A DNA stretch of 64,000 nt from Selaginella moellendorffii (lineage: Eukaryota > Plantae > Lycopodiophyta): contig NW_003314261.1 of NCBI RefSeq assembly GCF_000143415.4, positions 5,730,360 to 5,794,359 on the forward strand, read 5' to 3'. The translations under genes were made by a program, and so were the position numbers. The notes under the pieces were generated by a model, which was not told the origin of the DNA, did no database searches, and saw nothing but the letters and a program-made list of their open reading frames with translations. Shown one piece after another: positions 5,025-64,000 of this stretch. The first letter of the stretch is position 1, and each line of letters opens with the position of its first letter.

Positions 5025-6458
5025 TTGACGAGGAAACACTTTGCAAACACATTTTCTTCCTCGAGGTATGGATTGTCCACTTTGTTGAGCTTTAAAAGAG
5101 TTTTCTCCGCAGGTTTGAAACTAGATATGGATTTTTCTATCAACAAGGTTCTTCCCCACTCGCCTGCATGGCGGGGGAAAAGCGTGCTGTTTGATAAGAA
5201 AGTAGAAGTTACTAGGGAGGAGCCCCTCGACTTTTCAACAGCGTGGAAGCAGGAGGCTTTCAGAATGCATCTCCGGTGTGGGGGCATTGACCAGGCCGAG
5301 AAACTCTTCAGCAAGCTCCACACGCAGGATGTTATGCAGTACACCCTGCTCATCTCGGCTCTGGTCAGGGAAGGAAGATTTCACGACGCAGTCGGCTGGT
5401 TCCAGAGAATGCTGCTAGAAGGGAGAAAGCCAGATCGAGTTTGCTTCGTAGCAGTTGTGGGTGCTTACGGTGGGATTGGGGACTTGGACAAGGCAAAGTT
5501 TATCCATGGCTACCTCTACAGGTCTGGCTACGAGGCTGATATCATAGTCGGGACTGCTCTCGTCAACTTGTATGCCAAGTGCGGTAGCTTCCGGAACGCT
5601 CGGCTCATGTTCGGCAGGATCACTTCGAGCTCGACAGTGCTGTGGAACGCGATGATCACTGCGTATACCCAGAGCAGGTATGTGGAGCTCTACTGCGGCG
5701 AGGTTGTCAGCTTGTTTCAGCGGATGTGCTTGCAAGGGATCAGAGCGAACCAGGTGACGTTCGTCGCCGTGCTAAACGCCTGCGTTGGCCCGTCCATGGC
5801 GGAGGAAGTAGAAAGGATACATGGGCTGGTGACCGAGAGTGGTTTTCAAGGCGAGCTTCTCGTCCAGACCGCGTTGATCAAGGCTTATGGGAGAGCAAAG
5901 CTCGCGGGGATTGCTACGAGGATCTTCGAGGGGATAGTGGAGCGGGACATCGTTGCCTGGAACACTATGGTGGCGGCTTATGAAGCCGCGGGTCACTTCC
6001 GCGAGGCCGTGCACACCTTCTGGCAAATGCGAGCCGAGAGCCGAGTAACTCCAAACAGGATCTCCTTCGCGGCCGTGCTGAGAGCTTGCGCCGGTCTCCA
6101 GGACTTGAGGCAGACCGAGAGAGTTCATGGTCTTACGATGGAGTTGGGGATGGCTGGGGACGAAGAGGTGCAAGCGAGCCTCGTGGATGCGTATCTGGCG
6201 TGCGGCTCTCCAAGCGGAGCTCTCGGGATCTTTGGCTCGATGGTATCGCGGCCTCCTCGTTCGTGGAGGTCGGCCTTGCGAGCCGCGGGAGACGTGGTGG
6301 TGTTTAGATTGATGATGCTGGATCAAGGGTCAGCAGCAGTGGATGGAGTTACGCTGGGTGCTGCGCTTGGATTCTGTGAAACACGGGCTGACGTAGAGCT
6401 CGTCCGTGCGTGTGCTAAAGAAGCCGGGCTGGACCTGGACGAGGAACGGGCTTGGTAA
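5025..6458 (+). CDS. PLS-class pentatricopeptide repeat protein, intronless, no clear E/DYW end; true start uncertain
   Basis: Repeated PPR motifs (DVMQYTLLISAL, VGTALVNLYAKCGS, LWNAMITAY, DIVAWNTMVAAY, PNRISFAAVLRAC). Confidence 0.85.
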   Translation: MTRKHFANTFSSSRYGLSTLLSFKRVFSAGLKLDMDFSINKVLPHSPAWRGKSVLFDKKVEVTREEPLDFSTAWKQEAFRMHLRCGGIDQAEKLFSKLHTQDVMQYTLLISALVREGRFHDAVGWFQRMLLEGRKPDRVCFVAVVGAYGGIGDLDKAKFIHGYLYRSGYEADIIVGTALVNLYAKCGSFRNARLMFGRITSSSTVLWNAMITAYTQSRYVELYCGEVVSLFQRMCLQGIRANQVTFVAVLNACVGPSMAEEVERIHGLVTESGFQGELLVQTALIKAYGRAKLAGIATRIFEGIVERDIVAWNTMVAAYEAAGHFREAVHTFWQMRAESRVTPNRISFAAVLRACAGLQDLRQTERVHGLTMELGMAGDEEVQASLVDAYLACGSPSGALGIFGSMVSRPPRSWRSALRAAGDVVVFRLMMLDQGSAAVDGVTLGAALGFCETRADVELVRACAKEAGLDLDEERAW

Positions 6459-6722
6459 GATCCTGAAACGTCTGCATGAGAATTTTAAAAAGCTCTCTTT
6501 AGTAAACCTTTCTTTATCTTTGTCGTCAATGTCCAAATGCCAGTGAGCTAGCAAGACAAAATAGGTGTCAATTAACGAAATTCTTGTCTTTTAAGGAAGA
6601 ATATTTATTTTAAAATGTTTTTATACTTGCTTTATTCCATGCTCTTAAAAAACACTTTCACAACAAACAATGCTGGGGTAAATAAAAGATGGGTTAGATG
6701 AAATTGCATCTATAGCTAAGTC

Positions 6723-7134
6723 ATGTCTAACCAATTAAAATTTTCTATTTTCACTATAGTTTCTTTTATATTGGTGAGCAAATAATTTTTATTATGTTTT
6801 CTAACCCATTTCTTCTTTGTAGTGGATTAATATTTTTGGTTATGGGGATGAATGTAATGGGCAATTTAATCTATCTTGTAGTCTTTTGACATGTATTAAC
6901 AGGTATTTAACAGCTTCATGTTTAACAACTGATCTCACCATTAGTGTTCAAACAAATATCCAAATAGAAAATTGTGTTCCAGAGGTAACAAGTTGTAGTG
7001 TGGGTAATGCTGGTGAGTTTACATGTGTGGATGCCGGAGGTAATGAGATAACTCAAGAAGTATTTTGTGCAATTGTAAATACTAATGGTCAACTCTCCTG
7101 TGTACCACATGATCCAGAGGAGCCATTTACTTGA
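6723..7134 (+). CDS. Small secreted Cys-rich protein, CVNH (cyanovirin-N)-like, copy 1 (exons 6723-6773, 6823-7134; 120 aa)
   Basis: ATG 6723 opens hydrophobic exon MSNQLKFSIFTIVSFIL, followed by a 49-nt GTGAG...TAG phase-0 intron and an in-frame exon 2 with 9 Cys. A paralog at 15015-15446 has the same exon structure. The CVNH label rests on a visual motif match only. Confidence 0.8.
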
Positions 7135-7978
7135 ATAATAAATAAAGTATTAAATTATTCTATATTTATTATGTATGGTAGTAGATATAATAGTTTTTAT
7201 TGTAGTATATTTTTAAATTTCATCAAAGTTTTAATTTAACCAAAATAATTATTTCATTAAAATGATATTAAAGTTAAACTGATTAGCTTATTACTATTAT
7301 TAAACTACTGATAATGTTATTATTAACCACTCAACATCTCCCTAGTGAGTGTTCTTCACTGTTTGACAAAGATCTCTTTGATCTAATTAGATCTAGGATA
7401 AATCAATTGAGCTGGTGGGATTGAGCAATAGTTTCTTCTCAGTCAGATTCAAAGAGCCATTGTAAGTGTTGGAAGCATTTGTTACCGAGATTTCAAATTA
7501 TATTATGCTCTAAATTGAATTCTAGTTAAATTCATATAATATTTGATTAAATGCAAAAATATAAAGAGAATATGGTTAAGGTACCACATGCTAAACCATA
7601 TGTTATTCAGAAGAATGAAAGATATAGAACTTTTGCCAATGTTTCTTCATGCTCTGAACTTAATATGGCTCTAAGCCCAGCTCTAGTGTTTGGAATAATA
7701 GTGACTTCTTTCCTGATTCCTTAACATGCACAGGCAGAAGAGATAAAACCTGGAGAATATCCAGGCATATTCCTGGATATCCCTTAATTATTTCTGATGT
7801 TAATATTCTTTTATCAAAGCCTACTTCCATAGAAGAACACCTTGGTGGTTTGTATACCACCTTCGCACTAACTTCTACTAGTAGCTGGAGGGCCAATTTG
7901 GCCTAGGATTATGCCACTTTCCAGGCGGAGGTGTTTAAGAAGCAGTTCAAGCTAGGGTTTCTTGGCTTGGTCTTTATC

Positions 7979-8520
7979 TCACATGGTAGTGGCTAATCCC
8001 ACTTCGCCACGAAGCACTTCCGGAGCATCACTGCATGGGCAATGCTGGCTGGATAGATCCACTGCGTCAGGGTCATGCGTAATGTAGGGCTCTGGTGTTT
8101 TTCTCACGTACTTGCAAGTGTTATCAAGATCAGGCCTCAACACCGAGATCATGCTCACAAGCCCCAAGTTCGAGATGATCTCTTGTCCCTCACCCCAAGC
8201 TCGACGATCACGACCAGGAGCCTCAAAAGCTCGTCCATTTTTTACAAAATCTTTGACTAGAAGGTGGCATTCCTGATCTTCGAGCGCTAGCGGGAGTATC
8301 TGGTTGAAAATCAGGCCAAACTCTCGAGCTTTGTCAGTCAGCTGCCTCATAGCCAGCTCCCTCTGCAGAGGCGTGCCATTCTTCACCTTGAGTAGTAGCT
8401 TCATGATCTGCCTCTCGATCATGTCTCATTCTCAGACATGTCCTCCTCCTTGTATTACTTGACATCCTCAGCCTTCATCAGCAAACCATCCAGATTTTTC
8501 GTCAAAACACCATACTCCTG
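7979..8520 (-). pseudogene. SF3B1 (U2 snRNP splicing factor) fragment, internally deleted
   Basis: [31 protein letters not shown]...FNQILPL...[11 protein letters not shown] and [13 protein letters not shown] match SF3B1 HEAT-region motifs with many missing segments. Confidence 0.8.
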
Positions 8521-34711: not shown

Positions 34712-37700
34712 TCAGGGTTCTCTTGTAGATGGGCCGGGATCTGGAGGAACGTCAGGAGGAGGCATCGGTGGATCTGTAGACGGTATTAATTGCTCTTGAT
34801 CCCTTTGTATGAAGCGTTTTAATCGCTACACATGCACAATCTCCGGAGGATCGGCCTACTGAACGTCATGCCGAACCTCATAAACTTGTGGTCCAACTTG
34901 CCGCAACACCCGATACGGTCCTTTCCACTGCGCAAGGAGCCCCTTAGATAAACCACGTACCGTAAGATGGGGAAAACGGACTAACACCAAATCATCCACT
35001 TTGTACTCCGCTGGTGGACGATGATGGGAATTGTAGCGCCGTTGTTGTCCCACTTGTACGCGGCCTAAGTGTTCAGCAGACTCTGCTCGGACAAGTGGAA
35101 GAATGCTTGTCAAATATTGATCCCATGACCTAGCATCAGGAGCTCATGGTAATCGCGAAGGTAAACCCAGCTCTGTTGGTAATATTGGATCATGACCATA
35201 TAGAAGTTTATATGGTGAAGCACCAATAGAACTCTGCACCCCTGTGACATAAGCATACCGAAGAGACGGCAAATAACCATCCCAATCCGAATGTTGAAAG
35301 TTCACATACTTCGCAATCATCCCTTTGAATGTCCGAACGAGCCGTTCCACCAGACCGTCTGATTGTGGATGATAAGCACTCGTAAAAGTGTGGTGTATCC
35401 CCAACCGAGATGTCAAAACATGAAATACCTCAGCCATAAATGTAGGACCATTATCCGAAAGAATCCGTTCTGGACAAGAATGCTGGAACACCACTCGATT
35501 GAGGAGGAAGTATCCAACAGCAGTTGTAGAGGCACTAGCAAGAGCACCAACTTCCACCCAACGAGTCAAGTAGTCAGAAGCAATAATAACATACTCATTG
35601 CCAGCAGTCAATCGCGGAAAAGGTCCCATAAGATCAAACGCCACCAACTCAAATGGACGAGAAACTGCAATTGACTCCAACCGTCCTTCCGCAGCACAAG
35701 GGGGAGTATTACGAGCTTGGCACCAAACGCAGCTACGCACATACCGAATAATATCACGTCGCATCTCTGGCCAATAAAAAGATCTGCGCAGCTTCTCAGT
35801 GACACGACGGTGTCCCATATGCCCACCTAGAATAGGAGAATCATGGTAGGCATGGAGAAACCGCGGAATAAACACCGAAGGCACCACCAGCCGTAAATGA
35901 GCATCAGGATCTGTCCCCACAAAATAAAGAAGGCCATCTTCAAGGCGATATTGAGAATGTAAATGCCGAAAAGGCAAGTCATCAGCAAGTGATGCAGGAT
36001 TCTCAAACCCATCTCGAAGCCTTCGAATCCACGGCTCAATCTTTTGAGCCTCGCAAACCTCATCCAGAGAAGGTAGATCTTGCTCTACGCCCTGTGGACA
36101 CTGAACGTCAAGGACAGCAACCGCCGACGGCACAGAATCCTCATCTAGAAAATCCACAGATGCTGGAACAACAGGTTCGTCAGAAATATGAGAAGTGAGT
36201 GGAGAAGGAAGAGGAGCTCGAGAAAGGGCATCAGCATCAGCCATAGAACTCCCTGGGCGATGAACAACATCGAAATCATATATCTGAAGCTTCAAAGCCC
36301 ATTGAGCCGTACGACCAACCAGGTTCTTCTGCTTCAATAATGAAGTAACAGCAGCATGGTCACCTTCAAGTAACGTCCGAGAACCATGTAGATAGGCATG
36401 AAGTTTCTCGAAACCCCAGACTACTGCTAAACACTCCTTCTCCGTCGTGGAGTAGTTCATCTCCGCTGGTTGTAATGTACGGCTTATGTATGCAATGGGA
36501 TGGCGCTGACCAGGCACACTCGAGCTCTCTTGCATCAACACACCTCCAAGACCAATGTCAGAAGCATCCACGCGCAAAATAAAAGGTCGAGTGTAGTCAG
36601 GATATGCCAAAACCGGAGGAGTCGTCAATAGCTCTTTGAGATTCACGAACGCCCGCTCACAATCGGGAGACCAAATGAAAGATGACGTTGATGACTTCAG
36701 CAATGCTCGCAATGGTAAAGTGCGATCGGAAAGATGATCCACAAAACGACCGAGATACTGCACCTTACCCAAAAAACGCTGCACATCATTCACACACTTC
36801 GGAGTAGGGAACTTTAGAACAGCCACAAGTTTGTCAGGATCAACTTGCAAACCCTCACGAGAAATACGGTACCCAAGATAAGTTGTGTCCTTGGACCCAA
36901 ACACACACTTCGACCGCTTCAGATTTAAACCAACGTCGCGTAGCTGATCCAACACTTTACAAACATCACGAACATGCTCCTCCCACGTCCCCTCCGAGTG
37001 GATCAAGACATCATCAATGAAGTCAGCCGTCACCTCCGGCATATCGCAAAGAACCTCGTCCATCATCCGCTGAAAAGTTGCTGGAGCATTGTTCAAACCA
37101 AACGGCATCACCAAAAACTCGTACAAACCAAATGGTGTACGAAAAGCAGTCTTAGGAATATCGTCTTCAGCCATCGGTACTTGCCAATACCCAGAAGCAA
37201 GATCTAGCTTGGTGAACCAATGACTTCGCCCCAGACGATCCAAGAGATCAGCAGTGTGAGGAAGAGGGTACACGTCCGGGATCGTCACTTCATTTAACGG
37301 ACGATAGTCGATGCAGAAACGAATACTCCCATCAGGCTTCGTCACAAGATGAGGTTCACATGCCCAAGGACTCCGCGACTTCCGAATAACACCCTTCTCC
37401 AACATCTCTTTGACGTTTGCACGTAAAATCTTGATCTCCTTGGGTGACCGATGACGAACAAGAACCTTGATTGGACGAGCATCCCCGGTTGGAATGGGAT
37501 GACGTGTGGCAATCTTGGCCCCAGACGATAGGTCAAATTCAAAGAGATCAGAATACTCCTTCATGAGCCATTCAATTGCTGCAACACAAAGATCATCGGA
37601 GGGATTGGAAAAGGGAAGAGCAGAACAAGATGGAAACACAAGAGGAAATAATGGGGGAACAAAAGTAATGGAAGCAGAGGTAGAAGTAGAGGGACGAAGA

Positions 37701-38200
37701 GGTACGGAAGTGAGAGGAATGGATGAAACATAAGGAAGTATGAGACAAGGGGGAAAAGCCTCAAAGTCACACTTGGCATGATTGTGCTGCAACCAATCCA
37801 TACCAAGAATGAGGTCAAAAGCTTGACTCGGCACCACCCGCAACGACTGCAACTCAAGCTCGAGATCACCCACACGCACAACCAGGTCTGCCTCATCTCG
37901 TGCACATGCATGTGTGCGGCCGTTGCCATAAAGAATGAAAACTGGATCCGCCGCACGACGCAAGTGTAGACGACAACGTGTGGCAACAGGTTGAGCAATA
38001 GAAGATAAACTCGAACCTGTATCAACCAACACAGAGAGAAGAATAGAAGACCTCATGTTATAAAATCGAGCTTGGAAAGTAAACACTGGATGAACCGGTG
38101 CCGAGTGAACCCCTTGATGATACTCCCGAAAGAAAGATGGAGGGGTCACTAACTTATTTGCGCAAGGTCCCTCCATTACTCGCGCGACTCCTCGTTTCCC
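34712..38200 (-). pseudogene. pol: pol of copy A (PR, RT, RNase H, integrase with GPY/F motif); premature stops at 35144 and 34856
   Basis: LVDTGSS, RFCIDYRPLN, KLDLASGYWQV, MPFGLNNAPATFQ, FIDD, DASDIGLGG, HHCC, SDNG, WKGPYRV. Confidence 0.93.
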
Positions 38201-39107
38201 GAATGCACCTTGGTATCCAAACCTTCCACCGCAGCAGCACCAACGGGACGTTGCTGACGCCAAAGTCTCCACCCAGGAAATGGAGGTCGCCAATCCGGAA
38301 AGCGCCGACAACGCCGATAAGTATGACCAACTTCATCACACGCCCAGCAACGAATGTCACGGCCACGACCACGTCCTCGCCCTTGTCCTTGGACTCGAGT
38401 AGCAACAGCATCAACCTCCATGGGAACAGGACCATCACTCATAGGAAGTGGAGCTGAAGGACGTGTAGCAAGAAGTGGAAGAGGCGACGTCTCATAACGT
38501 TGTGCCAAGCGAAGAGCATCGTCAAGAGTGGCAGGAGCAAGTGCATGCACAAGTCCGACAAGATCTTGACGAAGTGCTGGCCACAGCATTCCTAGCTTGA
38601 TCCGCTCCGACATATTTGGCTCCGCACGAAGCAAAAGACTTCGGAAACGAACACCAAATTGCATCACTGACTCAGATGGCCCTTGGCGAAGACGATGCAA
38701 TTGTTGGAAGGCATCATCACAATCGTCGGCGTGTCCGAAGGTGCGTTTGAAGACGTCCGGAAGAACACTCCAATCGCCACGAGTAGCTGCGCTCAATCCA
38801 TTGTACCACTGCAATGCCGTCCCTTGAAGACATGTGGGGAACTCACGCAAATGTCGAGCATCATCCCAAGAATGATATGTGGCAATCACCATGAAGTGAT
38901 CGAACCAATGGTACACATCATCCCAGGATTCCCACGAAAGAACTCCGGCCGAACGCGAGGATTGGCACCAAAAGCAGGAGGAGTTGTACCATGTGCCGTG
39001 AACGCCGCCATCAATTGAGTTTGGTTGTTCAATTGCAAGCGCATAGCATCAAGCAATTGAACCAACTGTTGCTCTAGAGTCAAAGGAGGAGATTACGGAT
39101 CGGCCAT
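38176..39107 (-). pseudogene. gag: gag of copy A (1-bp deletion near 38922)
   Basis: Matches the intact gag at 60890-61822 but is one C shorter (tcccagg vs tccccagg). Zinc knuckle CWACDEVGHTYRRC. Confidence 0.9.
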
Positions 39108-48861: not shown

Positions 48862-51214
48862 TGGATTGTTGGAGGTGCCCGCGTCGCCGCCGCGCACCCT
48901 GCGCTGGCGCGGCGCGGCGGAGAGGAAAAGAAAAGACAACGGTTGGGTGTCTTGGCCCTAGGAACAGGAAGGTGAAATCTGTGCCACGTCATGTCATAGA
49001 AAACAACGATATTTTATTTGTGAATAATAAAAGATGTTTTATGATTATTTCTTGTTGTTTCCTTTATTTTTAAAGTGTATCTCTTTTTTTTTGTGAGTTC
49101 TTTTAGTCTTTTTGAATCTTTATTATTGTAATCTTTATTGAAGTCTTTGAAATGTTTTGTACTATATTTGTTATATGTTTTTTAATTAAGTTTTGTGAGT
49201 GCATGGAATATGGAAAGGGAATACAGAAATGTGCATATCAATTAACCCAAAAACCCTAGCTTATATACAGGAGCGAGTGGTCCGGATTGAAACCAATCCG
49301 ACGGCTACCAAAATCCACTACGCTAATATTAGTATACAGCATTGTAGCCGTACACTTGGCCCTCACATCATCCCCTCCTCTTGGAATAATGGAAGGCTGT
49401 TAGGGTTCTCTTGTAGATGGGCCGGGATCTGGAGGAACGTCAGGAGGAGGCATCGGTGGATCTGTAGACGGTATTAACTGCTCCTGATCCCTTTGTATGA
49501 AGCGTTTTAACCGCTGCACATGCACAATCTCCGGAGGATCAGCCTGCTGAACGTCATGCCGAACCTCATAAACTTGTGGTCCAACTTGCCGCAACACCCG
49601 ATACGGTCCTTTCCACTGCGCAAGGAGCCCCTTAGATAAACCACGCACCGTAAGATGGGGAAAACGGACTAACACCAAATCATCCACTTTGTACTCCGCT
49701 GGTGGACGATGATGGGAATTGTAGTGCCGTTGTTGTCCCACTTGTACGCGGCCTAAGTGTTCAGCAGACTCTGCTCGGACAAGTGGAAGAATGCTTGTCA
49801 AATATTGATCCCATGACCTAGCATCAGGAGCTCGTGGCAATCGCGAAGGTAAACCTAGCTCTGTTGGTAATATTGGATCATGACCATATAGAAGTTTATA
49901 TGGTGAAGCACCAACAGAACTCTACACCCCTGTGACATAAGCATACCAAAGAGACGGCAAATAACCATCCCAATCCAAATGTTGAAAGTTCACATACTTC
50001 GCAATCATCCCTTTGAATGTCCGAACGAGCCGTTCCACCAGACCGTTTGATTGTGGATGATAAGCACTCGTAAAAGTGTGGCGTATCCCCAACCGAGATG
50101 TCAAAACATGAAATACCTCAGCCATAAATGCAGGACCATTATCCGAAAGAATCCGTTCTGGACAAGAATGCTGGAACACCACTCGATTGAGGAGGAAGTA
50201 TCCAACAGCAGTTGCAGAGGCACTAGCAAGAGCACCAACTTCCACCCAACGAGTCAAGTAGTCAGAAGCAATAATAACATACTCATTGCCAGCAGTCGAT
50301 CGTGGAAAAGGTCCCATAAGATCAAACGCCACCAACTCAAACGGACGAGAAACTGCAATTGACTCCAACCGTCCTTCCGCAGCACAAGGGGGAGTATTAC
50401 GAGCTTGGCACCAAATGCAGCTACACACATACCGGATAATATCACGTCGCATCTCTGGCCAATAGAAAGATCTGCGCAACTTCTCGGTGACACGACGGTC
50501 TCCCATATGCCCACATAGAATAGGAGAATCATGGTAGGCATGGAGAAACCGCGGAATAAACACCGAAGGCACCACCAGCCGTAAATGAGCATCAGGATCC
50601 GTCCCCACAAAATAAAGAAGGCCATCTTCAAGGCGATATTAAGAATGTAAATGCCGAAAAGGCAAGTCATCAGCAAGTGATGCAGGATTCTCAAACCCAT
50701 CTCGAAGCCTTCGAATCCACGGCTCAATCTTTTGAGCCTCGCGAACCTCATCCAGAGAAGGTAGATCTTGCTCTACGCCCTGTGGACACTGAACGTCAAG
50801 GACAGCAACCGCCGATGGCACAGAATCCTCATCTAGAAAATCCACAGATGCTGGAACAACAGGTTCATCAGAAACATGAGAAGTGAGTGGAGAAGGAAGA
50901 GGAGCTCGAGAAAGGGCATCAGCATCAGCCATAGAACTCCCTGGGCGATGAACAACATCAAAATCATATATCTGAAGCTTCAAAGTGTGAGACACAAAAT
51001 CCCTAGGCCCCAAAGTGGAGCTGGAAGGGCGCCACATGGTAGTGGCCGAAGCGAGAGCCAAACGAGCGTAACACGTTTGGACCAAAAGCTCCGACTTGAA
51101 AAGTCAAGAGCGGGAGTGGAACTCCCAACGAAGTGCTCGAGGAACGAGCACGAAGCGAGCAAAAGGCGAGGCTCCAAAAAGGGACCCAAAAGGACCAACA
51201 CATGACACGTGGGA

Positions 51215-51968
51215 GTGTCCGAGATGGACTCGACTTGGAGTCCGAAGTGGAGTCCGAGATGGACTCGAGTTGGAGTCCGAAGTGGAGTCCGAGATGGACC
51301 CGAGTTGGAGTTCGAAGTGGAGTCCAAGATGGACCCGAGATGGAGTCCGAGATGGAGTCCGAAGTGGAGTCTGAGGTGGACCCGAGATGGACCCGAGTTG
51401 GAGTCCGAAGTGGAGTCCGAGATGGAGTCCGAGATGGAGTCCGAGATGGAGTCCGAGTTGGAGTCCGAGGTGGACCCAAGATGGACCCGAGTTGGAGTCC
51501 GAAGTGGAGTCCGAGATGGACCCGAGATGGAGTCCGAGATGGAGTCCGAGTTGGAGTCCGAGGTGGACCCGAGATGGACCCGAGTTGGAGTCCGAAGTGG
51601 AGTCCGAGATGGACCCGAGATGGAGTCCGAGATGGAGTCCGAGATGGAGTCCGAGGTGGACCCGAGATGGACCCGAAATGGAGTCCGAGATGGAGTCCGA
51701 GATGGACCCGAGATGGAGTCCGAGATGGAGTCTGAGATGGACCCGAGATGGACCCGAGATGGACCCGAGATGGAGTCCAAGATGGAGTCCGAGATGGAGT
51801 CCGAGATGGAGTCCGAAGTCGAGACCGAGACCGGGACCGAGACCGGGACCGAGACCGAGACCGAGACCGAGATCGGGACCGAGACCGAGACCGAGCCCGA
51901 GCCCGAGTCCGAGTCTGAATCCGAGTCCGAGTCCGAGTCCGAGTCCGAGTCCGAGTCCGAGTCCGGAG
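51215..51968. repeat. Satellite-like array in the 5' LTR (GAGTCCGAGATG / GACCCGAGATG units, then GAGACC/GAGTCC hexamers)
   Basis: Direct inspection. Confidence 0.95.
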
Positions 51969-54900
51969 CTTGAGAGGGTGAAAGCCCAAAGCGTTCGTCT
52001 CCCAGACCCTGGGGGGTTTGGTGAGCCCCAAAAGTATAGTAAGGGGGAGGACTGCAGTGGAGCCAGTTTGGCCAGGAAAGGCCAGTTTGGCCAGGAAAGG
52101 CCAGTTTGGCCCAGGAAGGCCAGACCCAGTGTTGGGTGATGAGCTGCCCACTGGGAAGTCCAAGACTAGAGTGAACACAGACCGACAAGCGGGGTAGCTT
52201 GGTGAAGTGTTCAAGAGCCGGCTCTAGTTCCCCCGGGAGATCGACTGGCCGATGCTCCCAGTCCAAGTGTGGGTGGCACTACCTACTTGGATACCTGGTG
52301 TGGCTCAACGGAACCCGCTCTAAGCCCATGGCTAGAGCACCCAAGGGCAGAAGGCGAGGAGAGTACCCAGGTGGCTCGCGTAAGGCCACGGTGTTCCGAA
52401 ATGTTGCCCCAAAGGCCCAGACTGTGGAAAGGAAGAGGAGCAGTCTTCTGGGGTAGTGACCAAGGACACAGTCGTGTGGTGAGGAAGTCCCAGAGGACCG
52501 TGGGACTTAGTGGTCAGGCCTGTGGGTCTTGATCCAGTGGCAGTATTGGCAAACACGGCCAGGGGCAGAAAGGGACTTAGTGGAGACTGACAGAGGGATA
52601 TTGGGGAAGGCTATTCCCCTTGTCGGTGGGCATCCTAAGGATGCTAAGGAGTGGATTTGAGATGACCACTCACGGATGGTTTGCCTAGTCTTGGAGGGCC
52701 AAGACGGTGATGCAAGTGGTGTTGGACCACCAGTGTGACCAAGGTAAATGGGCATGGCCTTAGCGTAACAGGCCGGTACGTCGGTGATACCTTGGGGTGT
52801 CGATCATGGGATCGGACACGTGGAGCACTTGGACCAAGTGCTAAGGTTGAGTGGCATGGATGCCATTCTCGGGGTTAGCAAGCCCCAAGTCCTGAGTTGG
52901 ACTTATGGAAGTTGTCAATGAGACTCCTCCAAGTGGTCAGCCGTGTGGTTAAGTGACTAAAGTAAAATGGAAAAATTAGTCGCTTACAATTTGGTATCGG
53001 AGCTGTTCCTTAGTCCGACTTTTATTGGTGCTCAAGTATATCACCACTAGTGTTGGCATCGGAAGGTCCAAGGAGTGGGCCTATCCTTGAGGAGTAGCAA
53101 GTCGGGAAGACATGGCTCTCCATTACAGTTCATGTGTGAACTTGTAGACGAGGTGGTGGATAGAAAAGGGCCAATAATGGAACGACTTTGGGATCTTGGG
53201 AACAGTGCAAGGTTTTCCTCATTGAGTTGAGGATGTGATCCGGATGAGCATTTGTCTCAGCAAATTGGCTTAGGTTGTTGTGGTAAACAACTAAAGTTGG
53301 GATCACGGGAAAGATAGAGACTCCAAAACAATAAAGGAGTCACAAGATTATCCTCATATGGTTGAGGTTGGTGCTCATGAATGTGAGACCAAAGGTAATG
53401 ACCGTGGAAGGTCAAATACGGAAGAGGACTCAAGTCCTTGAAATGGTAGCCGGGGCTACCTTTAATAAATGCTGGAACAACCCAAGGAGTTGGGGGTGTA
53501 TTAAGTGGATGAGTTGGTATTCTCATCACATGGACAAGTAGTCCTAAAGGGCAAAGGTTGCCCCCAGAGAACAAAATCAAGTGTCGGAGTAACGCTTGTG
53601 AAAATAGTCCTTTTGAGTAGGACCGGAATGCAAGATGTGTATTCCAGTGAGCTAGTGCCCCACAAGTAGGACCTTACGGGTCGGTGGATTAACCAAGTCC
53701 AAAACTGCTAGACGACTCAAGTAGAGTCAAGGGAAGGTCCTAAAAAGGACTGAATGAAGCATTTGGACTGAGGTGCGTTGTACCCCACAAAGGATGGGGG
53801 GGGATCATAGGATCCAAGGATGAGAACAGAGAGTATCTCATCGATGGCAAAATGTGCCATGCTAAAGTTATGGGAAAGGTGTTCCCAGAAGAAAACAACT
53901 TTGACATAAAGTTGTGTGTGACCTCTATGGGGCAGTGCTAATGGTTGGCATGAGAAAGAGCGGTGTTGGTCTTGGCAAAGACTTAGACACGAAGGGGAAA
54001 TGTCATAGAGGTAGGCTCGTGGAGCCGATGGTGTGGAGACACCAAATGTGCCAAGGTGTGGTACCTTGAGGCTATGTTGGTGGGTTCATGAGAACCCCTT
54101 GCCAAAGGAATCCCAATGGAAATGGGAATGGCATAGCCTAAGCTGCAGAGCATGCAGTTGGAGTGTGGTGACCCAGATAGTGATGGAGGTGTGAAAGCAC
54201 CAAACAATGAGTTGTAGGACTTGACAACTATGAGGCAACTAAGCAAGAGGTGCAAAATAACTGGTTAAACGGGTAGAAGGTAGCTACCCAAGACTTCTAG
54301 TATAGGGAAGTCGGATATACCCTTACGGGGGATAAGTTGCTTATGTTGCGATATAGTAAGTCAATGTCATAAAAGGAAATACTCATTGTCAAGAAAGCCA
54401 TCATTGGGACACCCGAACACTCTAGAACACCAGAAGGTGGTGTTTGATGTCGCGAGGGCAATGGATAAAGCCCAAGGGACTAAGTCCCTAGCGAATGATG
54501 GATAGAAGGTGCTATCCAAATGTCCAAGGTTGCGGAGACAGGAGAGGACTGTCTACCCAAATTGGACAAAGCCAAAAATGGAATTTTGGCAAGGCTAGTG
54601 ATGGGCATGTAAAGGCCCGTAAGCAACAATGTAATCCCAGTGTGTGGGATTATAAGGTGAGCATACCCGGATTGAGGAACCACTCCCTAGGCTATTGGGT
54701 AGGTTCATCCCTAAGAATACTTGCTAAAGCGTGATAGAAAGTGCAAAGCTATCCTCCTGGTCTGGAGGAGAATGACCAAAGGAAAGGTGTGAAGCCAAAA
54801 AGCAAGAAGTAAGGGGATAGAACCGAACCATAAGAATCAAAGGGCATAACCAAGGTTGATTATGCCAGCTGGGAGTGGAGAATCAAGTGGGGGCTCAAGG

Positions 54901-57263
54901 GTGTTGCCACTAGCAACCGTGATGCCATGGAGAGTCTAAAATATGGAATTGTCCATGTTAGACTATGTGGCATTTGGAAGGCTTGCAAAAAAGGAGGCCT
55001 TAGCAAGCTGAGGGACAGAGTTCCTTCAAGGTTCCCAAAGACGATTCTAGGTAGCTTAGTACCTAGAAAGGCCAAGTGTAAATGGTTCATGGAACGCGCG
55101 AAATCAGAGTAGCGCAGCAGAAGCGTGGTCTTGAAGCTTGCCATGAGGCAAGGCTATCAAGGTTAGGGAAGTAGTTCCCGAGTGTTCAAAGAGAGGGCTT
55201 TGAACGAAAGTCGATGGTCAAGGACTTTCACGCTTATGCAGGAACCATGTTACAATGGTCGGAGGACTTGCCAAGTGAGATTGGCACGTCGGGGGAACAA
55301 ATACCATAGTTGAAGGTGATATCTTCAAAAAGGGTGGGCCAGGGGGCCGAGCATGGAGGAGTCCATGCATGATCACAGACATGTCAAGTGAGAGGACTTG
55401 GCAGTGTGGAGGAACTAGGTTCCTAAGCTGTGATCTGTAGCGCGCTTTAAAAATAGGTTGGTGCACCGGCGTGGGGAGTCACGCCAGGCATCTAGTGTGA
55501 TGCCGTCCGTAGATGCATATACGGAGGTTGGGTTCGAGTCCCGACCCTCTAGTGCTTGGGTTCGAGTCCCAAATCACTAGGGCGTGGTGATGGTTTGGAA
55601 TATGAGGACACTCATATTTCGGTGGTCATGGACTCTCAGTGGGGAGACTGGTTTGGGCACACCGCCAAGCGAGGGATGCCTCGGAGTCGTGATGCACGGT
55701 TAGATTGCCTAGTGTGAAAGCTCGGCATATCTAACTTGAACGCTTTGGTGCAAGTGGCACCAAGGTCGTGGTGAGTGAGATGGGGACACCTAATCTCAGT
55801 TGCTATGAACCCTTAGCCGTAAGGGCTAGCTTGGGTGCACCGCCAAGTGTGGGGGATGCCCCCGGGGTTATAGTCAACAACTTGGAGGTCTAGAAAACCA
55901 AGTACCTCTTGGCAAATCTGTTAAGGTGCCAAGGTGAGATCACTAGGTGATCTTATGGCTAGATAAGGACAAGGTCCTTGGTTGGCTAAGGAATGAAGTT
56001 CCTGGTTCAAAATGTTGAAATTGAACTGTTTAAGGTAGTGTGGCTTGGTCGTGATAACCAAGTGGGAAGAGCACCTAAGGGAAATAAACTATGTCCGTGC
56101 GATGGCATAGTGAGTCCGAGGAAAGTAGTCTCTATAAAAGACCCATGGGAGGGTCACGAAATTGGGCCGTGAATAGAGCCCATAGCAGAAGATGCTAAAG
56201 AGACGTACTAGGGGTGAACATCCTCCGGACTTGGCAAAGAAGAGTCTTTGCTATGGAACCGAAACAATATCTCAAGGAGGGAGGTAGAGATTCGATGTTG
56301 CTTGGTGCAACAATCAACGGATAGGAGCAAAAGATGAGTGGCCAAGATAGGGCCGTGGAATCCCTTGGAAGGAATCCAAGTGACAAAGTTAGGCGAGGAA
56401 CACTAATGTGTTGGACGCTAACAAGTTGCGGGAAAGGAAGTGTGTTTCCAAGGAGGGATTCCGAAATGCTCCGATTTGGCGAAAGTGGAAGCTCCAAGGG
56501 AGGGAGCGGTAAGGTAGCCAAATGATAGGGCCATGAACAGCCCTAGCACAAAGTATGATAACTGGAACTTTGGCACGAAATAGAAGAGAGGATGATGGTG
56601 CCCTCGAGTAGAGAACTTCCTAGGATGGGAAGTGGAGTTGCACAAAAGGTGCAAGGCAAGGTGTCGGAGACACCTAAGATATTGACTCCAAGAAGTCAAA
56701 ATTCAAAGTTCCAAAGTGCAAAGGTTATATCGATGGAAATTAAGACTACTCGAGAAGGAGTAGTGGGATTGACTGAGAGAAGGGTCTCTAAGAGGTTTAG
56801 CGAGAACTAAACCAATAAAAGGAGAGAACCATTACATGTGGTCCAATCAGTCTCTAAGTTGGAGAGACTACGCTCCTTAAAGGATGGACAAGGCATGGTG
56901 AGCCTTTGATGTCAAACCATAGACAAAGATTGGCTAGGTGCCAAGGATGGAAATGGTAACACGTGTGGGTGTCACTTTAGAAAAGGGTTTACCGTTCGAT
57001 GAGGACATCGAACTTCGTCTATGGGTGGTGAAGTTGTGAGACACAAAATCCCTAGGCCCCAAAGTGGAGCTGGATGGGCGCCACATGGTAGTGGCCGAAG
57101 CGAGAGCCAAACGAGCGTAACACGTTTGGACCAAAAGCTCCGACTTGAAAAGTCAAGAGCGGGAGTGGAACTCCCAACGAAGTGCTCGAGGAACGAGCAC
57201 GAAGCGAGCAAAAGGCGAGGCTCCAAAAAGGGACCCAAAAGGACCAACACATGACACGTGGGA

Positions 57264-58005
57264 GTGTCCGAGATGGACTCGACTTGGAGTCCGAAGTGGA
57301 GTCCGAGATGGACTCGAGTTGGAGTCCGAAGTGGAGTCCGAGATGGACCCGAGTTGGAGTCCGAAGTGGAGTCCAAGATGGACCCGAGATGGAGTCCGAG
57401 ATGGAGTCCGAAGTGGAGTCTGAGGTGGACCCGAGATGGACCCGAGTTGGAGTCCGAAGTGGAGTCCGAGATGGAGTCCGAGATGGAGTCCGAGATGGAG
57501 TCCGAGTTGGAGTCCGAGGTGGACCCAAGATGGACCCGAGTTGGAGTCCGAAGTGGAGTCCGAGATGGACCCGAGATGGAGTCCGAGATGGAGTCCGAGT
57601 TGGAGTCCGAGGTGGACCCGAGATGGACCCGAGTTGGAGTCCGAAGTGGAGTCCGAGATGGACCCGAGATGGAGTCCGAGATGGAGTCCGAGATGGAGTC
57701 CGAGGTGGACCCGAGATGGACCCGAAATGGAGTCCGAGATGGAGTCCGAGATGGACCCGAGATGGAGTCCGAGATGGAGTCCGAGATGGACCCGAGATGG
57801 ACCCGAGATGGACCCGAGATGGAGTCCAAGATGGAGTCCGAGATGGAGTCCGAGATGGAGTCCGAAGTCGAGACCGAGACCGGGACCGAGACCGGGACCG
57901 AGACCGAGACCGAGACCGAGATCGGGACCGAGACCGAGACCGAGCCCGAGCCCGAGTCCGAGTCTGAATCCGAGTCCGAGTCCGAGTCCGAGTCCGAGTC
58001 CGGAG
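57264..58005. repeat. Same array in the 3' LTR
   Basis: Direct inspection; two hexamers fewer than in the 5' LTR. Confidence 0.95.
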
Positions 58006-59006
58006 CTTGAGAGGGTGAAAGCCCAAAGCGTTCGTCTCCCAGACCCTGGGGGGTTTGGTGAGCCCCAAAAGTATAGTAAGGGGGAGGACTGCAGTGGAGC
58101 CAGTTTGGCCAGGAAAGGCCAGTTTGGCCCAGGAAGGCCAGACCCAATGTTGGGTGATGAGCTGCCCACTGGGAAGTCCAAGACTAGAGTGAACACAGAC
58201 CGACAAGCGGGGTAGCTTGGTGAAGTGTTCAAGAGCCGGCTCTAGTTCCCCCGGGAGATCGACTGGCCGATGCTCCCAGTCCAAGTGTGGGTGGCACTAC
58301 CTACTTGGATACCTGGTGTGGCTCAACGGAACCCGCTCTAAGCCCATGGCTAGAGCACCCAAGGGCAGAAGGCGAGGAGAGTACCCAGGTGGCTCGCGTA
58401 AGGCCACGGTGTTCCGAAATGTTGCCCCAAAGGCCCAGACTGTGGAAAGGAAGAGGAGCAGTCTTCTGGGGTAATGACCAAGGACACAGTCGTGTGGTGA
58501 GGAAGTCCCAGAGGACCGTGGGACTTAGTGGTCAGGCCTGTGGGTCTTGATCCAGTGGCAGTATTGGCAAACACGGCCAGGGGCAGAAAGGGACTTAGTG
58601 GAGACTGACAGAGGGATATTGGGGAAGGCTATTCCCCTTGTCGGTGGGCATCCTAAGGATGCTAAGGAGTGGATTTGAGATGACCACTCACGGATGGTTT
58701 GCCTAGTCTTGGAGGGCCAAGACGGTGATGCAAGTGGTGTTGGACCACCAGTGTGAGCAAGGTAAATGGGCATGGCCTTAGCGTAACAGGCCGGTACGTC
58801 GGTGATACCTTGGGGTGTCGATCATGGGATCGGACATGTGGAGCACTTGGACCAAGTGCTAAGGTTGAGTGGCATGGATGCCATTCTCGGGGTTAGCAAG
58901 CCCCAAGTCCTGAGTTGGACTTATGGAAGTTGTCAATGAGACTCCTCCAAGTGGTCAGCCGTGTGGTTAAGTGACTAAAGTAAAATGGAAAAATTAGTCG
59001 CTTACA

Positions 59007-60914
59007 CAAAGCCCATCGAGCCGTACGACCAACTAGGTTCTTCCGCTTCAATAATGAAGTAACAGCAGCATGGTCACCTTCAAGTAACGTCCGAGAACCA
59101 TGTAGATAGGCATGAAGTTTCTCGAAACCCCAGACTGCTGCTAAACACTCCTTCTCCGTCGTGGAGTAGTTCATCTCCGCTGGTTGTAATGTACGGCTTA
59201 TGTATGCAATGGGATGGCGCTGACCAGGCACACTCGAGCTCTCTTGCATCAACACACCTCCAAGACCAATGTCAGAAGCATCCACGCGCAAAATAAAAGG
59301 TCGAGTGTAGTCAGGATATGCCAAAACCGGAGGAGTCGTCAGTAGCTCTTTGAGATTCACGAACGCCCGCTCACAATCGGGAGACCAGATGAAAGATGAC
59401 GTTGATGACTTCAGCAACGCTCGCAATGGTAAAGTGCGATCGGAAAGATGATCCACAAAACGACCGAGATACTGCACCTTACCCAAAAAGCGCTACGCAT
59501 CATTCACACACTTCGGAGTAGGGAACTTTAGAACAGCCACAAGTTTGTCAGGATCAACTTGCAAACCCTCACGAGAAATACGGTACCCAAGATAAGTTGT
59601 GTCCTTGGACCCAAACACGCACTTCGACCGCTTCAGCTTTAAACCAACGTCGCGTAGCTGATCCAACACTTTACAAACATCACGAACATGCTCCTCCCAC
59701 GTCCCCTCCGAGTGGATCAAGACATCATCAATGAAGTCAGCCTTCACCTCTGGCATATCGCAAAGAACCTCGTCCATCATTCGCTGAAAAGTTGCTGGAG
59801 CATTGTTCAAACCAAACGGCATCACCAAAAACTCGTACAAACCAAATGGTGTACGAAAAGCAGTCTTAGGAATATCATCTTCAGCCATCGGTACTTGCCA
59901 ATACCCAGAAGCAAGATCTAGCTTGGTGAACCAACGACTTCGCCCCAGACGATCCAAGAGATCAGCAGTGTGAGGAAGAGGGTACACGTCCGGGATCGTC
60001 ACTTCATTTAACGGACGATAGTCGATGCAGAAACGAATACTCCCATCAGGCTTCGTCACAAGATGAGGTTCACATGCCCAAGGACTCCGCGACTTCCGAA
60101 TAACACCCTTCTCCAACATCTCCTTGACGTTTGCACGTAAAATCTTGATCTCCTTGGGTGACCGATGACGAACAAGAACCTTGATTGGACGAGCATCCCC
60201 GGTTGGAATGGGATGACGTGTGGCAATCTTGGCCCCAGACGATAGGTCAAATTCAAAGAGATCAGAATACTCCTTCATGAGCTGATCAACAGCTGCAACA
60301 GAAAGATCATCGGAGGGATCGGAAAAAGGAAGAGCAGAACAAGATGGAAACACAAGAGGAAATAATGGGGGAACAAAAGTAATGGAAGTAGAGGTAGAAG
60401 TAGAGGGACGAAGAGGTACAGAAGTGAGAGGAATGGATGAAACATAAGGAAGTATGAGACAAGGGGGAAAAGCCTCAAAGTCACACTTGGCATGATTGTG
60501 CTGCAACCAATCCATACTAAGAATGAGGTCAAAAGCTTGACTCGGCACCACCCGCAACGACTGCAACTCAAGCTCGAGATCGCCCACACGCACAACCAGG
60601 TCCGCCTCATCTCGTGCACATGCATATGTACGGCCGTTGCCATAAAGAATGAAAACTGGATCCGCCGCACGACGCAAGTATAGACGACAACGTGTGGCAA
60701 CAGGTCGAGCAATAGAAGATAAACTCGAACCTGTATCAACCAACACGGAGAGAAGAATAGGAGACCTCTTGTTATAAAAACGAGCTTGGAAAGTAAACAC
60801 TGGATGAACCGGTGCCGAGTGAACCCCTTGATGATACTCCCGAAAGAAAGATGGAGGGGTCACTAACTTATTCGCGCAAGGTCCCTCCATTACTCGCGCG
60901 ACTCCTCGTTTCCC
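59007..60914 (-). pseudogene. pol: 5' part of pol of copy B (PR-RT-RH), stop at 59493
   Basis: Near-identical to copy A pol; continues at 50985 down to 49400 (integrase, stop at 49922). Confidence 0.9.
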
Positions 60915-61822
60915 GAATGCACCTCGGTATCCAAACCTTCCACCGCAGCAGCACCAACGGGACGTTGCTGACGCCAAGGTCTCCACCCAGGAAATGGAGG
61001 TCGCCAATCTGGAAAGCGCCAACAACGCCGATAAGTATGACCAACTTCATCACACGCCCAGCAACGAATGTCACGGCCATGACCACGTCCTCGCCCTTGT
61101 CCTTGGACTCGAGTAGCAGCAGCATCAACCTCCATGGGAACAGGACCATCACTCATAGGAAGTGGAGCTGAAGGACGTGTAGCAAGAAGTGGAAGAGGCG
61201 ACGTCTCATAACGTTGTGCCAAGCGAAGAGCATCGTCAAGAGTGGCAGGAGCAAGTGCATGCACAAGTCCGACAAGATCTTGACGAAGTGCTGGCCACAG
61301 CATTCCTAGCTTGATCCGCTCCGACATATTTGGCTCCGCACGAAGCAAAAGACTTCGGAAACGAACGCCAAATTGCATCACCGACTCAGATGGCCCTTGG
61401 CGAAGACGATGCAATTGTTGGAAGGCATCATCACAATCGTCGGCGTGTCCGAAGGCGCGTTTGAAGACGTCCGGAAGAACACTCCAATCGCCACGAGTAG
61501 CTGCGCTCAATCCATTGTACCACTGCAATGCCGTCCCTTGAAGACATGTGGGGAACTCACGCAAACGCCGAGCATCATCCCAAGAATGATATGTGGCAAT
61601 CACCGTGAAGTGATCGAACCAATGGTACACATCATCCCCAGGATTCCCACGAAAGAACTCCGGCCGAACGCGAGGATTGGCACCAAAAGCAGGAGGAGTT
61701 GTACCATGTGCCGTGAACGCCGCCATCAACTGAGTTTGGTTGTTCAATTGCAGGCGCATAGCATCAAGCAATTGAACCAACTGCTGGTCTAGAGTCAAAG
61801 GAGGAGATTGCGGATCGGCCAT
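60890..61822 (-). CDS. gag: Intact gag of copy B (310 aa, one CCHC knuckle)
   Basis: Open ORF MADPQSPPL...PEFFRG...LRQGPSESVMQF...CWACDEVGHTYRRC...HSGNEESRE*. Confidence 0.92.
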   Translation of the reverse strand: MADPQSPPLTLDQQLVQLLDAMRLQLNNQTQLMAAFTAHGTTPPAFGANPRVRPEFFRGNPGDDVYHWFDHFTVIATYHSWDDARRLREFPTCLQGTALQWYNGLSAATRGDWSVLPDVFKRAFGHADDCDDAFQQLHRLRQGPSESVMQFGVRFRSLLLRAEPNMSERIKLGMLWPALRQDLVGLVHALAPATLDDALRLAQRYETSPLPLLATRPSAPLPMSDGPVPMEVDAAATRVQGQGRGRGHGRDIRCWACDEVGHTYRRCWRFPDWRPPFPGWRPWRQQRPVGAAAVEGLDTEVHSGNEESRE

Positions 61823-64000
61823 GAAAATGAATGAGAAAGAAAGAGCAAAAGAAGAGAAATGACAAAAAGCTAGAAAGAAATGGTAGATCTAGACAATGCA
61901 AAAAGCTAGATCTAAACCAAAATCCTGAAAGGAAAGAACAAAAGAAAGGAAATGGAAAAAGCTAGATCTAGACAATGCAAAAGCTAGATCTAAACCGAAA
62001 TCCCAAATCCAAGCACTCCCCAGGGACAATCAAAGTTGCCCCTCACCTCCACCAATGTGAGTGCATGGAATATGGAAAGGGAATACAGAAATGTGCATAT
62101 CAATTAACCCAAAAACCCTAGCTTATATACAGGAGCGAGTGGTCCGGATTGAAACCAATCCGACGGCTACCAAAATCCACTACGCTAATATTAGTATACG
62201 GCATTGTAGCCGTACACTTGGCCCTCACAGTTTTAAATTGTTTTATGTTTTTTTTAAGATTTGGTGTATATTTATTATTTGTATATTTATTTTATTATTT
62301 TATTGTCAATTATGATCTAGGAGTTTAACAAAGTTTTTTCCTATAGCTTTTAAATTAGTTTTGTGATGTTTACATTTAGTTTCAGAATAAAACTTATTGC
62401 ACAGTTTTGATTTTTTCCATAAATTATTTATAAATAAATTTTAAAAATTCTAATCACTTTTTACCATTTTTTTCTAACCATTATACACCTTACCAAATCC
62501 CTATATTATTTATTAGCTCATTTCTCCTTTATTGCATTATTTGCTTATTTATTAATCCTATTTTGAGTTGAGTATATAATCTGGTAAACTTATTTTTTTA
62601 GTAAAATTAAATATAATTATTAGATTAATAAATATATAAAATTATTTTTATTTTCTTATAGTTCAGTATATATATAATTCCATCTGTGGTGGAAAATTGT
62701 GAAAAATAACTTCTATAAATATTGTTTAAATATTTTAAGAATTATGTTAAAACATCATGTAATTAGAGCACTAGATTTACCCTATTATAAGATGCCTTTT
62801 GTTATATACAAAAGGTTAAAACATTTTTAAAAAAAACGTTTTTTTTTTTTTGCAACGTTTCAGTACTTCTTTCAAATTTCTAAGTTAATAATGCTTTTAA
62901 TACATTTATGATTGGTTAGTTTGCACTTAGTGAATTATCATTCATTCATTCATTAGCTGTTTATGAGGTTTTATAATGTATGATACTGACAGATTATAAT
63001 CTTTTGAGCCATTCATTTGCTGAACTCCTTGAAGTCTTATACCACCAAGCCTTCTGTCCTCACCCTAGGCTTCGCTGATCTACCTGCCGTACATCATGGG
63101 TTCAAGCCTGAATGCAATCCTGAGGTGTACTCACCAGTTTATCAATTTGAATGTTAATGTTAATCAATTTCCACTGTTTCTGATGATGTTGTAAATGTAA
63201 ATTTTATCAAGTGTGTTAAATAAAATACATCAACAACATCATGCATGCCACGCTGCAGATTGCTACGTCATTAATCCATGGTGGCACAGAATGAATAGTG
63301 AAAGCTATGCCGTGATAGGTTGTGGGTATACTATACACCATGTGCTGTCCTTGAATGCATACATTTACACAAGCCAACGTGCCGAGGAAGTGATAGTTCA
63401 AATACACACAAGTCCTCCTGGCACAAGAAATAACAAACATGGCATCAAAAGATCTCTTGATCTTTGCGGATCGGTGTCTATTACTGGAAGCGCGTATCGA
63501 TTGATTCAATCCAATGGATCTAAACAAATGAGCATGTAGATTTTGGAGAGTTTCACGTGCCTTTGCGCAGTCGTACGATATAATCTCATATCCTCACGCG
63601 AGAGTCCCTCTCGATCAATCAAACTCCTCTCCTCTCTTAGCTTTCAAAACCAGAGAGTTTCTGCTATTCCAGTAGCGAGAAAGAGGCTTTGAATCGATAC
63701 ATGGTTTCGTCGTCTTTCATGGATATATATGAGCTTGAAGAGATTCCTTGATGATTCCATCAGCCAGCGCGCGTAGAATAAAACCGTATACAAAGTGGGA
63801 AGGAGTGCCCCTGTCGACTCCATTAAATTCCCACACAGCTTGGCATGAAAAGGAACGTCGTTATTTGCTTGGACCCGCTGGAAACTTTAATGCTTTCATC
63901 TCACAAACGGGGGCGCGCAGAAAGTCAGGGACATGAGAAGGAAAGAAAGAGGAAGAGATTGATTTTCTTCTTAAATCTCGTGCTTAAAACCTTTCAAAGC

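Follow-up and report, generated by a model that had tools for sequence, protein, structure and literature searches.

The window analysed here, meaning the whole 64,000-nucleotide stretch of Selaginella moellendorffii DNA, contains PPR genes, a GH17+X8 glucanase gene, a DEAH helicase gene, and Ty3/gypsy elements. It also holds two paralogous genes, designated A and B, whose second exons each encode nine cysteines. The features of the two genes and of their decayed neighbors are as follows.

6723-6773, plus strand, gene A exon 1: 17 codons, with a translation resembling the hydrophobic N terminus of a signal peptide
6774-6822, plus strand, gene A intron: 49 nt, GT..AG, phase 0, with a CTAAC branch-point-like motif
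6823-7134, plus strand, gene A exon 2: 103 codons and the stop codon, comprising the putative end of the signal peptide and a 95-aa mature 9-Cys domain
6859-7020, plus strand, gene A segment aligned to cyanovirin-N (CVN) residues 2-54: repeat 1 with the Cys pair equivalent to C8-C22, up to the start of repeat 2
7072-7095, plus strand, gene A C-terminal hairpin motif IVNTNGQL, matching the signature I-x-N-x-[DN]-G-x-L of the cyanovirin-N homologs (CVNH)
14077-14353, plus strand, dead 3' PPR fragment: duplicated with gene B from 6038-6389 (blastn identity, 88-92%; 56% GC)
15015-15065, plus strand, gene B exon 1: signal-peptide-like, identical in the allele
15066-15137, plus strand, gene B intron: 72 nt, GT..AG, phase 0
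15138-15446, plus strand, gene B exon 2: 94-aa mature 9-Cys domain
15560-15640, plus strand, decayed partial third copy: KDCV...CS and EITQL.DC..IN pieces with an internal deletion

The exons, the GT..AG introns, and the open reading frames were all found for both genes, in agreement with the sequence-only reading, which had proposed an intact two-exon gene at 6723-7134 and a paralog at 15015-15446. An in-frame stop lies two codons upstream of the gene A ATG, this ATG and the splice donor occupy homologous positions in gene B and in the allele, and the intron motif TTCTAACCCATTT is common to gene A, gene B, and both alleles. The encoded proteins have 120 (gene A) and 119 (gene B) amino acids. 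Their exon-2 portions align with a single 1-codon gap, are identical at 70 of 102 positions (69%), and share all 9 Cys, which bears out the earlier manual count of about 68% with nine conserved Cys, and the motifs GQFxxSC-x13-C, IQI, and IxNxNGxL were present as had been described. The 17 mostly hydrophobic residues of exon 1 run on into the first 8 residues of exon 2, and this hydrophobic stretch closes with G-Y-G or A-I-G directly before D-E-C. Exon 1 together with the first 8 exon-2 residues would thus form a signal peptide, and the proteins are probably secreted. All of the searches described below were made exon by exon, with exon 1 and exon 2 unjoined.

The major data bearing on the reality of the genes were the comparisons between alleles and between paralogs. 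The scaffold of the other haplotype, GL377577.1, carries both genes intact (ATG, GT..AG, the CTAAC motif, and 9 Cys). Allele A' differs from A in exon 2 by 6 nt, comprising 5 nonsynonymous changes and 1 synonymous change, while between allele B' and B there are 3 nonsynonymous changes, 2 synonymous ones, and a stop shifted by one codon, giving 8 nonsynonymous versus 3 synonymous differences overall. Between the paralogs, which share 79% nucleotide identity in exon 2, dS was 0.38 and dN was 0.23. A dN/dS near 1 had been set by the sequence-only reading against its own proposal, and on this point the outcome is split: the Nei-Gojobori estimate of 0.60 lies below 1, but its bootstrap interval of 0.32-1.28 includes 1. 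In a neutral simulation with 67 random substitutions placed in exon 2, the frame stayed open in 3.7% of runs, all 9 Cys were kept in 0.19%, and both were retained in about 0.01% (P about 1e-4). The retention of the open reading frame and of the Cys between the paralogs is therefore far beyond the neutral expectation. From this simulation and from the intact alleles, it was concluded that, through the greater part of the period after the duplication, the sequence evidently evolved as that of a protein dependent on disulfides. The evidence for selection is nevertheless mixed, as dN/dS alone is not decisive while the Cys and frame retention is strong. A high share of amino acid changes is often seen in defence-type secreted proteins, and it would also fit a recent relaxation of constraint.

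Such a relaxation is the core of one alternative, which we consider very improbable, namely, that genes A and B, after functioning through most of the period following their duplication, are now unexpressed relics drifting in AT-rich DNA. This would be consistent with the predominance of nonsynonymous changes between alleles (5:1 and 3:2), with a dN/dS interval that takes in 1, with the decayed third copy beside gene B, and with the finding of no transcript-derived protein in the collections searched. The last of these is weak evidence for a gene that could be specific to a tissue or a stress, and the alternative has to accommodate four copies that all keep the frame, the splice sites, the branch-point motif, and the 9 Cys, as well as the low probability of that outcome in the neutral simulation. 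Genes A and B, known from genomic sequence alone, are taken to be real or recently real protein-coding genes.

The two genes differ sharply in composition from their surroundings. Their GC3 values are 18% (gene A) and 10% (gene B) versus 66-82% for the neighboring PPR and GH17 genes. Sharp AT-rich islands of 15-35% GC were observed in this window of approximately 50% GC at about 6500-7800, 14600-15700, 20500-23000, and 62000-64000, and the first two consist solely of the 9-Cys genes and their flanks. No other Cys-rich or CVNH-like open reading frame was present in the islands at 20500-23000 and 62000-64000 within the window, and no convincing inverted repeats of the kind that mark transposon ends were seen around the two gene islands. 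Upstream of gene A lies a PPR gene, and it is a piece of this gene (6038-6389) that was duplicated together with gene B. The dead PPR piece is still GC rich, as listed above, and allelic divergence is nearly equal in the island (2.6%) and in GC-rich genes (1.7-1.8%). From these two observations it was deduced that the AT richness belongs to the gene unit and does not reflect regional decay.

Several further features of the locus were recorded. The 9-Cys exons (6820-7166 versus 15135-15472) are 79% identical, compared with 88-92% for the PPR piece duplicated along with them, which is about twice the divergence; the gene may have evolved faster, the PPR piece may have undergone gene conversion, or two separate events may be involved. 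Two tRNA-Pro(UGG) genes that are 99% identical, at 13940-14011 and 15717-15789, both on the minus strand and 1778 bp apart, bracket exactly the dead PPR fragment, gene B, and the decayed third copy, which suggests that a tRNA gene was the site at which the bracketed block was inserted or duplicated. In GL377565.1, gene A is closely followed on its downstream side by a called gene at 7979-8422 (minus strand; 12853-13296 of L001) encoding 147 amino acids without a Pfam family; its counterpart on the allelic scaffold has no called gene, and the DNA there is 91% identical with many gaps. The neighboring PPR gene has, apart from its allele, a nearest database relative of only 33% identity and led to no further members of the family, and no exact-sequence record was found for the PPR open reading frame at 15836-17626. 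Farther along the window, 50986-52380 and 57035-58398 form a duplicate of approximately 1.4 kb with 92-100% identity, 6 kb apart, which holds short units densely repeated in tandem (12, 23, and 35 nt apart) and long overlapping open reading frames on both strands. A Ty3/gypsy polyprotein frame at 35144-38311 (minus strand) encodes protease, reverse transcriptase, RNase H, and integrase. The segment 36293-39221 is repeated at 59007-61936, 22.7 kb away, and since the two copies are 98-99% identical, the Ty3/gypsy retrotransposons are deduced to have been recently active or recently duplicated.

An exact match to the neighboring PPR protein assigns the window to scaffold GL377565.1 of the S. moellendorffii assembly GCA_000143415.2. 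No called gene exists at the site of gene A or gene B in the record of this scaffold, and a word-index search with gene A exon 2 against a collection of 5.8 billion protein sequences returned no protein sharing three 5-mers. On these two results the genes are considered unannotated, and it is probably their position in AT-rich islands with low GC3 that caused gene finders to miss them. Within the window, tblastn found genes A and B as the sole copies, together with the decayed fragment near 15560-15640, for which the match itself covers 15589-15624 (EITQLIDCEFIN) and the remainder was recognized by reading the sequence.

Standard searches for relatives gave nothing usable. In the Pfam scan of the whole exon-2 proteins and four sub-pieces, which was the profile check advised by the sequence-only reading, the CVNH family (PF08881; gathering score, 24.5 bits) did not appear even at E values up to 10, and the rows that did appear (DUF421, RQC, and zf-P11, at E 0.06-0.3) were dismissed as noise. 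Searches of PDB sequences with single sequences, pieces, and a profile found no CVN at E up to 10. A knottin (asteropsin-like) identity was considered because of a phmmer match to the sponge knottin asteropsin F; it was rejected, as this match spans only 21 residues (E 0.25), no profile match accompanied it, and the fold searches list no knottin. Exhaustive HMMER comparison of the two-paralog profile with 1.84 billion representatives produced three matches, all of them long repetitive proteins; these were deemed artefacts, being bacterial-type proteins of unrelated Pfam families with scores summed over 6-16 repeats. The ESM Atlas feature search gave no usable match and nothing CVNH-like. The Atlas shape search gave TM values of about 0.4 to NTF2-like, CooT, and other folds, again with nothing CVNH-like, a result that was considered uninformative since the query model was of low confidence. 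By standard homology searches alone, then, the 9-Cys protein is an orphan.

The sequence-only reading had nonetheless placed the protein in the CVNH family, and this assignment was examined with a purpose-built profile. Genuine cyanovirin genes were located in a bacterial genome collection through a degenerate DNA pattern of the cyanovirin motif, and the following three, all encoding signal peptides, were retrieved.

L003 7240-7638, minus strand, cyanovirin gene of Nostoc spongiaeforme FACHB-130
L004 3046-3450, minus strand, cyanovirin gene of Nostoc sp. FACHB-280
L005 3268-3672, plus strand, cyanovirin gene of a Pleurocapsa MAG

The three proteins belong to Pfam CVNH at 80-83 bits. From their alignment 85 CVNH proteins were collected, with no plant members among them, and a hidden Markov model was built from 82. 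Against this model the four Selaginella proteins (A, B, and both alleles) scored 13.8-17.2 bits, while composition-preserving shuffles (2000 each of A and B) reached maxima of 9.0 and 9.4 bits. The hmmsearch alignment was almost gapless, placing model positions 2-43 on mature residues 5-47 and pairing GQFNLSC with g-d-f-s-q-t-C, L-T-A-S-C with L-s-a-t-C, and I-Q-I with i-d-L. Comparison of the four-sequence alignment with the CVNH alignment by hhalign gave a probability of 85.6% and a P value of 5.6e-6 over 53 columns, with a local span of mature residues 5-58 on CVN 2-54. The score of 34.3 was compared to those of 300 column-shuffled controls, which did not exceed 19.1, and to that of the reversed alignment (9.9); the smallest P value among the 300 shuffles was 0.0065, as expected, so that the hhalign P values behave as calibrated. 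As a control against the choice of a family made after its motif had been seen, the CVNH model was also run over 1509 six-frame stop-to-stop open reading frame pieces of the window. Gene B exon 2 ranked first (16.1 bits) and gene A exon 2 second (14.6 bits), with the next piece at 6.4 bits.

The first-half residue mapping previously proposed by eye was reproduced exactly by these profile alignments, with GQFxxSC-x13-C on CVN 2-22 and IQI on IDL. Support at the sequence level is limited to the first 43-54 residues (CVN residues 2-54). The second-half domain of the model, covering the C-terminal hairpin, was weak at 1.4-2.0 bits and fits either CVN hairpin.

The predicted structures point in the same direction. 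AlphaFold2 models, built with an input of only two to four sequences, were all-beta with 7-8 strands and of low confidence (pLDDT of 55.6 for A and 57.1 for the B mature domain). When model B was compared with 48,161 representative chains, the first place went to the fern protein CrCVNH (Z 4.9; 85 residues; residues 1-94 of the model on 1-109 of the chain), followed by a circularly permuted CVN at rank 2 (Z 4.7), MoCVNH3 at rank 3 (Z 4.2), and GzCVNH at rank 17, so that four different CVNH cluster representatives stood in the top 17. Foldseek with model B gave CVN or CVNH for 14 of the 17 best matches listed (ranks up to 17), at E 0.1-0.3. In a second look at model B, ranks 1-8 were all CVN or CVNH, with Z 4.6-5.4 and rmsd 3.0-4.5 A over 72-85 residues of the whole chain. 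An independent run with model A placed CVN and CVNH chains among beta-propeller fragments at Z 4.1-4.6. The monomer comparison suggested by the sequence-only reading thus returned the anticipated family as its best matches, on models with pLDDT values of 55-57. Individually, Z values of 4-5 lie in the noise range, and the AlphaFold2 models may partly echo the N-terminal motif. For one small family to head two whole-PDB rankings is still not the chance expectation, even though each score is weak.

These data were weighed against the possibility that the protein is a lineage-specific secreted Cys-rich orphan unrelated to CVNH, with a GQF..C-x13-C likeness that arose by convergence or chance and was then echoed by AlphaFold2. 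The failure to match any Pfam family, PDB sequence, or large database would be explained on those terms, as would the low structure confidence with Z values of only 4-5, the Atlas structure and feature searches that show nothing CVNH-like, and a second half without a significant sequence match. An unrelated orphan would not, however, be expected to give model and hhalign scores far above 4000 sequence shuffles and 300 column shuffles, to supply exactly the two exon-2 frames singled out by a window-wide CVNH scan, or to place four CVNH cluster representatives in the top 17 of 48,161 chains (model B). This alternative was judged distinctly unlikely. Since the custom model, hhalign, and the unbiased fold searches agree, kinship to the cyanovirin family is regarded as supported with good, though not full, confidence, and the earlier family assignment is upheld, albeit with no match to the curated Pfam model.

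How much of the CVNH fold is present was deduced mainly from the path of the alignment through the Cys-rich middle. CVN has two tandem repeats of about 50 residues, 10 strands, one disulfide in each repeat (C8-C22 and C58-C73), and neighboring N and C termini, and its fold consists of two pseudo-symmetric lobes that both combine a three-stranded sheet with a hairpin. Among the 82 CVNH proteins, all of about 100-109 amino acids, 78 have 4 Cys. The 9-Cys core is about 83 residues, and its models have 8 strands. The sequence-only reading had envisaged a single repeat split by an insertion of approximately 30 residues. This was not borne out, as hhalign runs on through the middle and the fold matches span the whole CVN chain. 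The segment E-N-C-V-P-E-V-T-S-C, which belongs to the supposed insertion, falls on CVN hairpin 1, and a second G-E-F-T-C (G-Q-F-L-C in gene B) is placed on N-F-I-E-T-C, the start of CVN repeat 2. The global hhalign alignment (mature 4-86 versus CVN 1-101) next opens gaps of 2, 3, and 14 residues and then sets the terminal Q-E-V-F-C-A-I-V-N-T-N-G-Q-L against CVN I-N-L-D-D-H-I-A-N-I-D-G-T-L, with IVNTNGQL on CVN 91-98. Cys occupy the C8 and C22 columns at 13-residue spacing and the C58 column, while the partner equivalent to C73 is ambiguous. The second half has a C-x13-C pair like that of the first half, and an internal-repeat test of the 9-Cys proteins found no significant repeat (P 0.09-0.6).

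The continuation of the profile alignment through the middle, the whole-chain fold matches, and the 8 strands are the basis on which the protein is read as a CVNH that is complete but compacted. As far as the alignments and models indicate, it is likelier that the Cys-rich middle represents a shrunken hairpin 1 and repeat 2 than a foreign module. The converse proposal, a true half-CVNH consisting of one repeat with a foreign 30-residue Cys-rich insertion that would homo- or heterodimerize, possibly via the ninth Cys, into a two-lobed lectin, draws on the restriction of recognizable sequence signal to repeat 1 and the terminal hairpin, on the odd number of Cys, on the two neighboring paralogs, and on the domain-swapped dimers that CVN itself forms (PDB entry titles and established knowledge). 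It conflicts with the hhalign path through the middle, in which the second GEF-x-C meets NFIETC, and with the superposition of the monomer models on 72-85 residues of whole CVN chains, and we consider it highly unlikely. Obligate homo- or heterodimerization and an interchain disulfide are not required by the compact CVNH interpretation, and a reading in which the protein must dimerize is not supported.

The structure proposed here is as follows. Genes A and B are paralogous coding genes, in each of which a short phase-0 intron separates a putative signal-peptide exon from an exon for a mature domain of approximately 95 residues. The mature protein is probably a highly divergent, compacted member of the CVNH fold, secreted from these unannotated genes; the alignments and models make this the favored explanation, held with moderate confidence. 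The first repeat is kept almost without gaps, with strands 1-3 and the pair equivalent to C8-C22 at the same 13-residue spacing, and the C-terminal hairpin signature IxNxNGxL is likewise retained, such that domain A would survive as strands 1-3 plus the last hairpin. Of domain B, about 31 residues would remain, stapled by Cys. The middle, proposed to start with the second G-[EQ]-F-x-C...x13...C motif, would consist of remnants of hairpin 1 and repeat 2 that together fall about 18 residues short of their CVN length, with about 19 residues of repeat 2 missing. Four of the nine Cys would make up the two canonical disulfides; the other five would probably provide two staples and one free Cys, with one of the extra staples plausibly tying the N terminus to the C terminus.

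The proposed protein may be compared with three known systems. The cyanobacterial CVNH proteins (PF08881; Nostoc spongiaeforme and Nostoc sp. FACHB-280) likewise consist of a signal peptide and a small all-beta domain, and Nostoc cyanovirins start with GQFSLTC where the Selaginella proteins have GQFNLSC in one copy and GQFLESC in the other. Also held in common are the Cys pair with 13-residue spacing, the L-T-x-x-C strand, the third strand I-x-[LI], and the terminal I-x-N-x-[DN]-G-x-L hairpin. The cyanobacterial core, in contrast, has about 101 residues and 4 Cys compared with about 83 residues and 9 Cys in Selaginella, hairpin 1 of the Selaginella proteins is without the D-G turn of CVN, and the Selaginella genes differ in their eukaryotic host, their spliceosomal intron, and the absence of a Pfam match. 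CrCVNH from the fern Ceratopteris richardii (PDB 2JZJ), the best structural match of model B, also comes from a seedless vascular plant; it is, however, a full-size two-repeat CVNH, and model B, itself of low confidence, matches it weakly (rmsd 4.5 A; 8% identity). MoCVNH3 of Magnaporthe oryzae (PDB 5C8O), a type III member with a LysM domain between its repeats, indicates that the fold tolerates large changes at the repeat junction. There a whole extra domain is inserted, while the Selaginella middle is shortened and Cys rich, with cross-linking predicted.

With regard to function, the protein would be a secreted apoplastic glycan binder acting through a domain-A-type site, most likely in defence. 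A secreted glycan-binding defence role is plausible. CVNH proteins are characterized by their binding to high-mannose (Man-alpha-1,2-Man) glycans. At the established CVN sugar contacts of domain A, the hhalign mapping retains a few identical or similar residues (T7 to S, T25 to T, N93 to N, and D95 to N), while the domain-B contacts are mostly lost or deleted. Since few CVN sugar contacts survive the alignment, lectin activity is offered as a hypothesis and not as a finding.

Lectins of the cyanovirin type are investigated for their antiviral and antifungal glycan binding, and they also serve as a model for domain swapping. What appears to be new here is an odd, shrunken, 9-Cys variant of this known family, with the smaller size and extra disulfides being predictions from sequence and models. 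A variant about one fifth smaller, with extra predicted disulfides and perhaps a single site for binding, would reveal the extent to which the fold tolerates reduction, and such a compact form could serve as a sturdier scaffold. The genes also exemplify a class of small secreted Selaginella genes that escapes gene prediction and Pfam through extremely AT-rich coding sequence and divergence. Because such genes escape both, inventories of plant lectins and defence peptides in early vascular plants are incomplete. In the broadest formulation, which we regard as unlikely though well short of negligible, lycophytes may hold an annotation-invisible branch of the cyanovirins, whose minimal disulfide-reinforced scaffold would comprise 8 strands, one glycan site, and a core of approximately 83 residues. 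The branch would be carried in gene-sized units of extreme AT richness, a composition that would move together with the gene. If this were true, the AT-rich units could be the sign of a mutational or epigenetic regime particular to such genes; alternatively, they could point to an ancient transfer out of cyanobacteria, in which CVN proteins have the shared start GQFSLTC.
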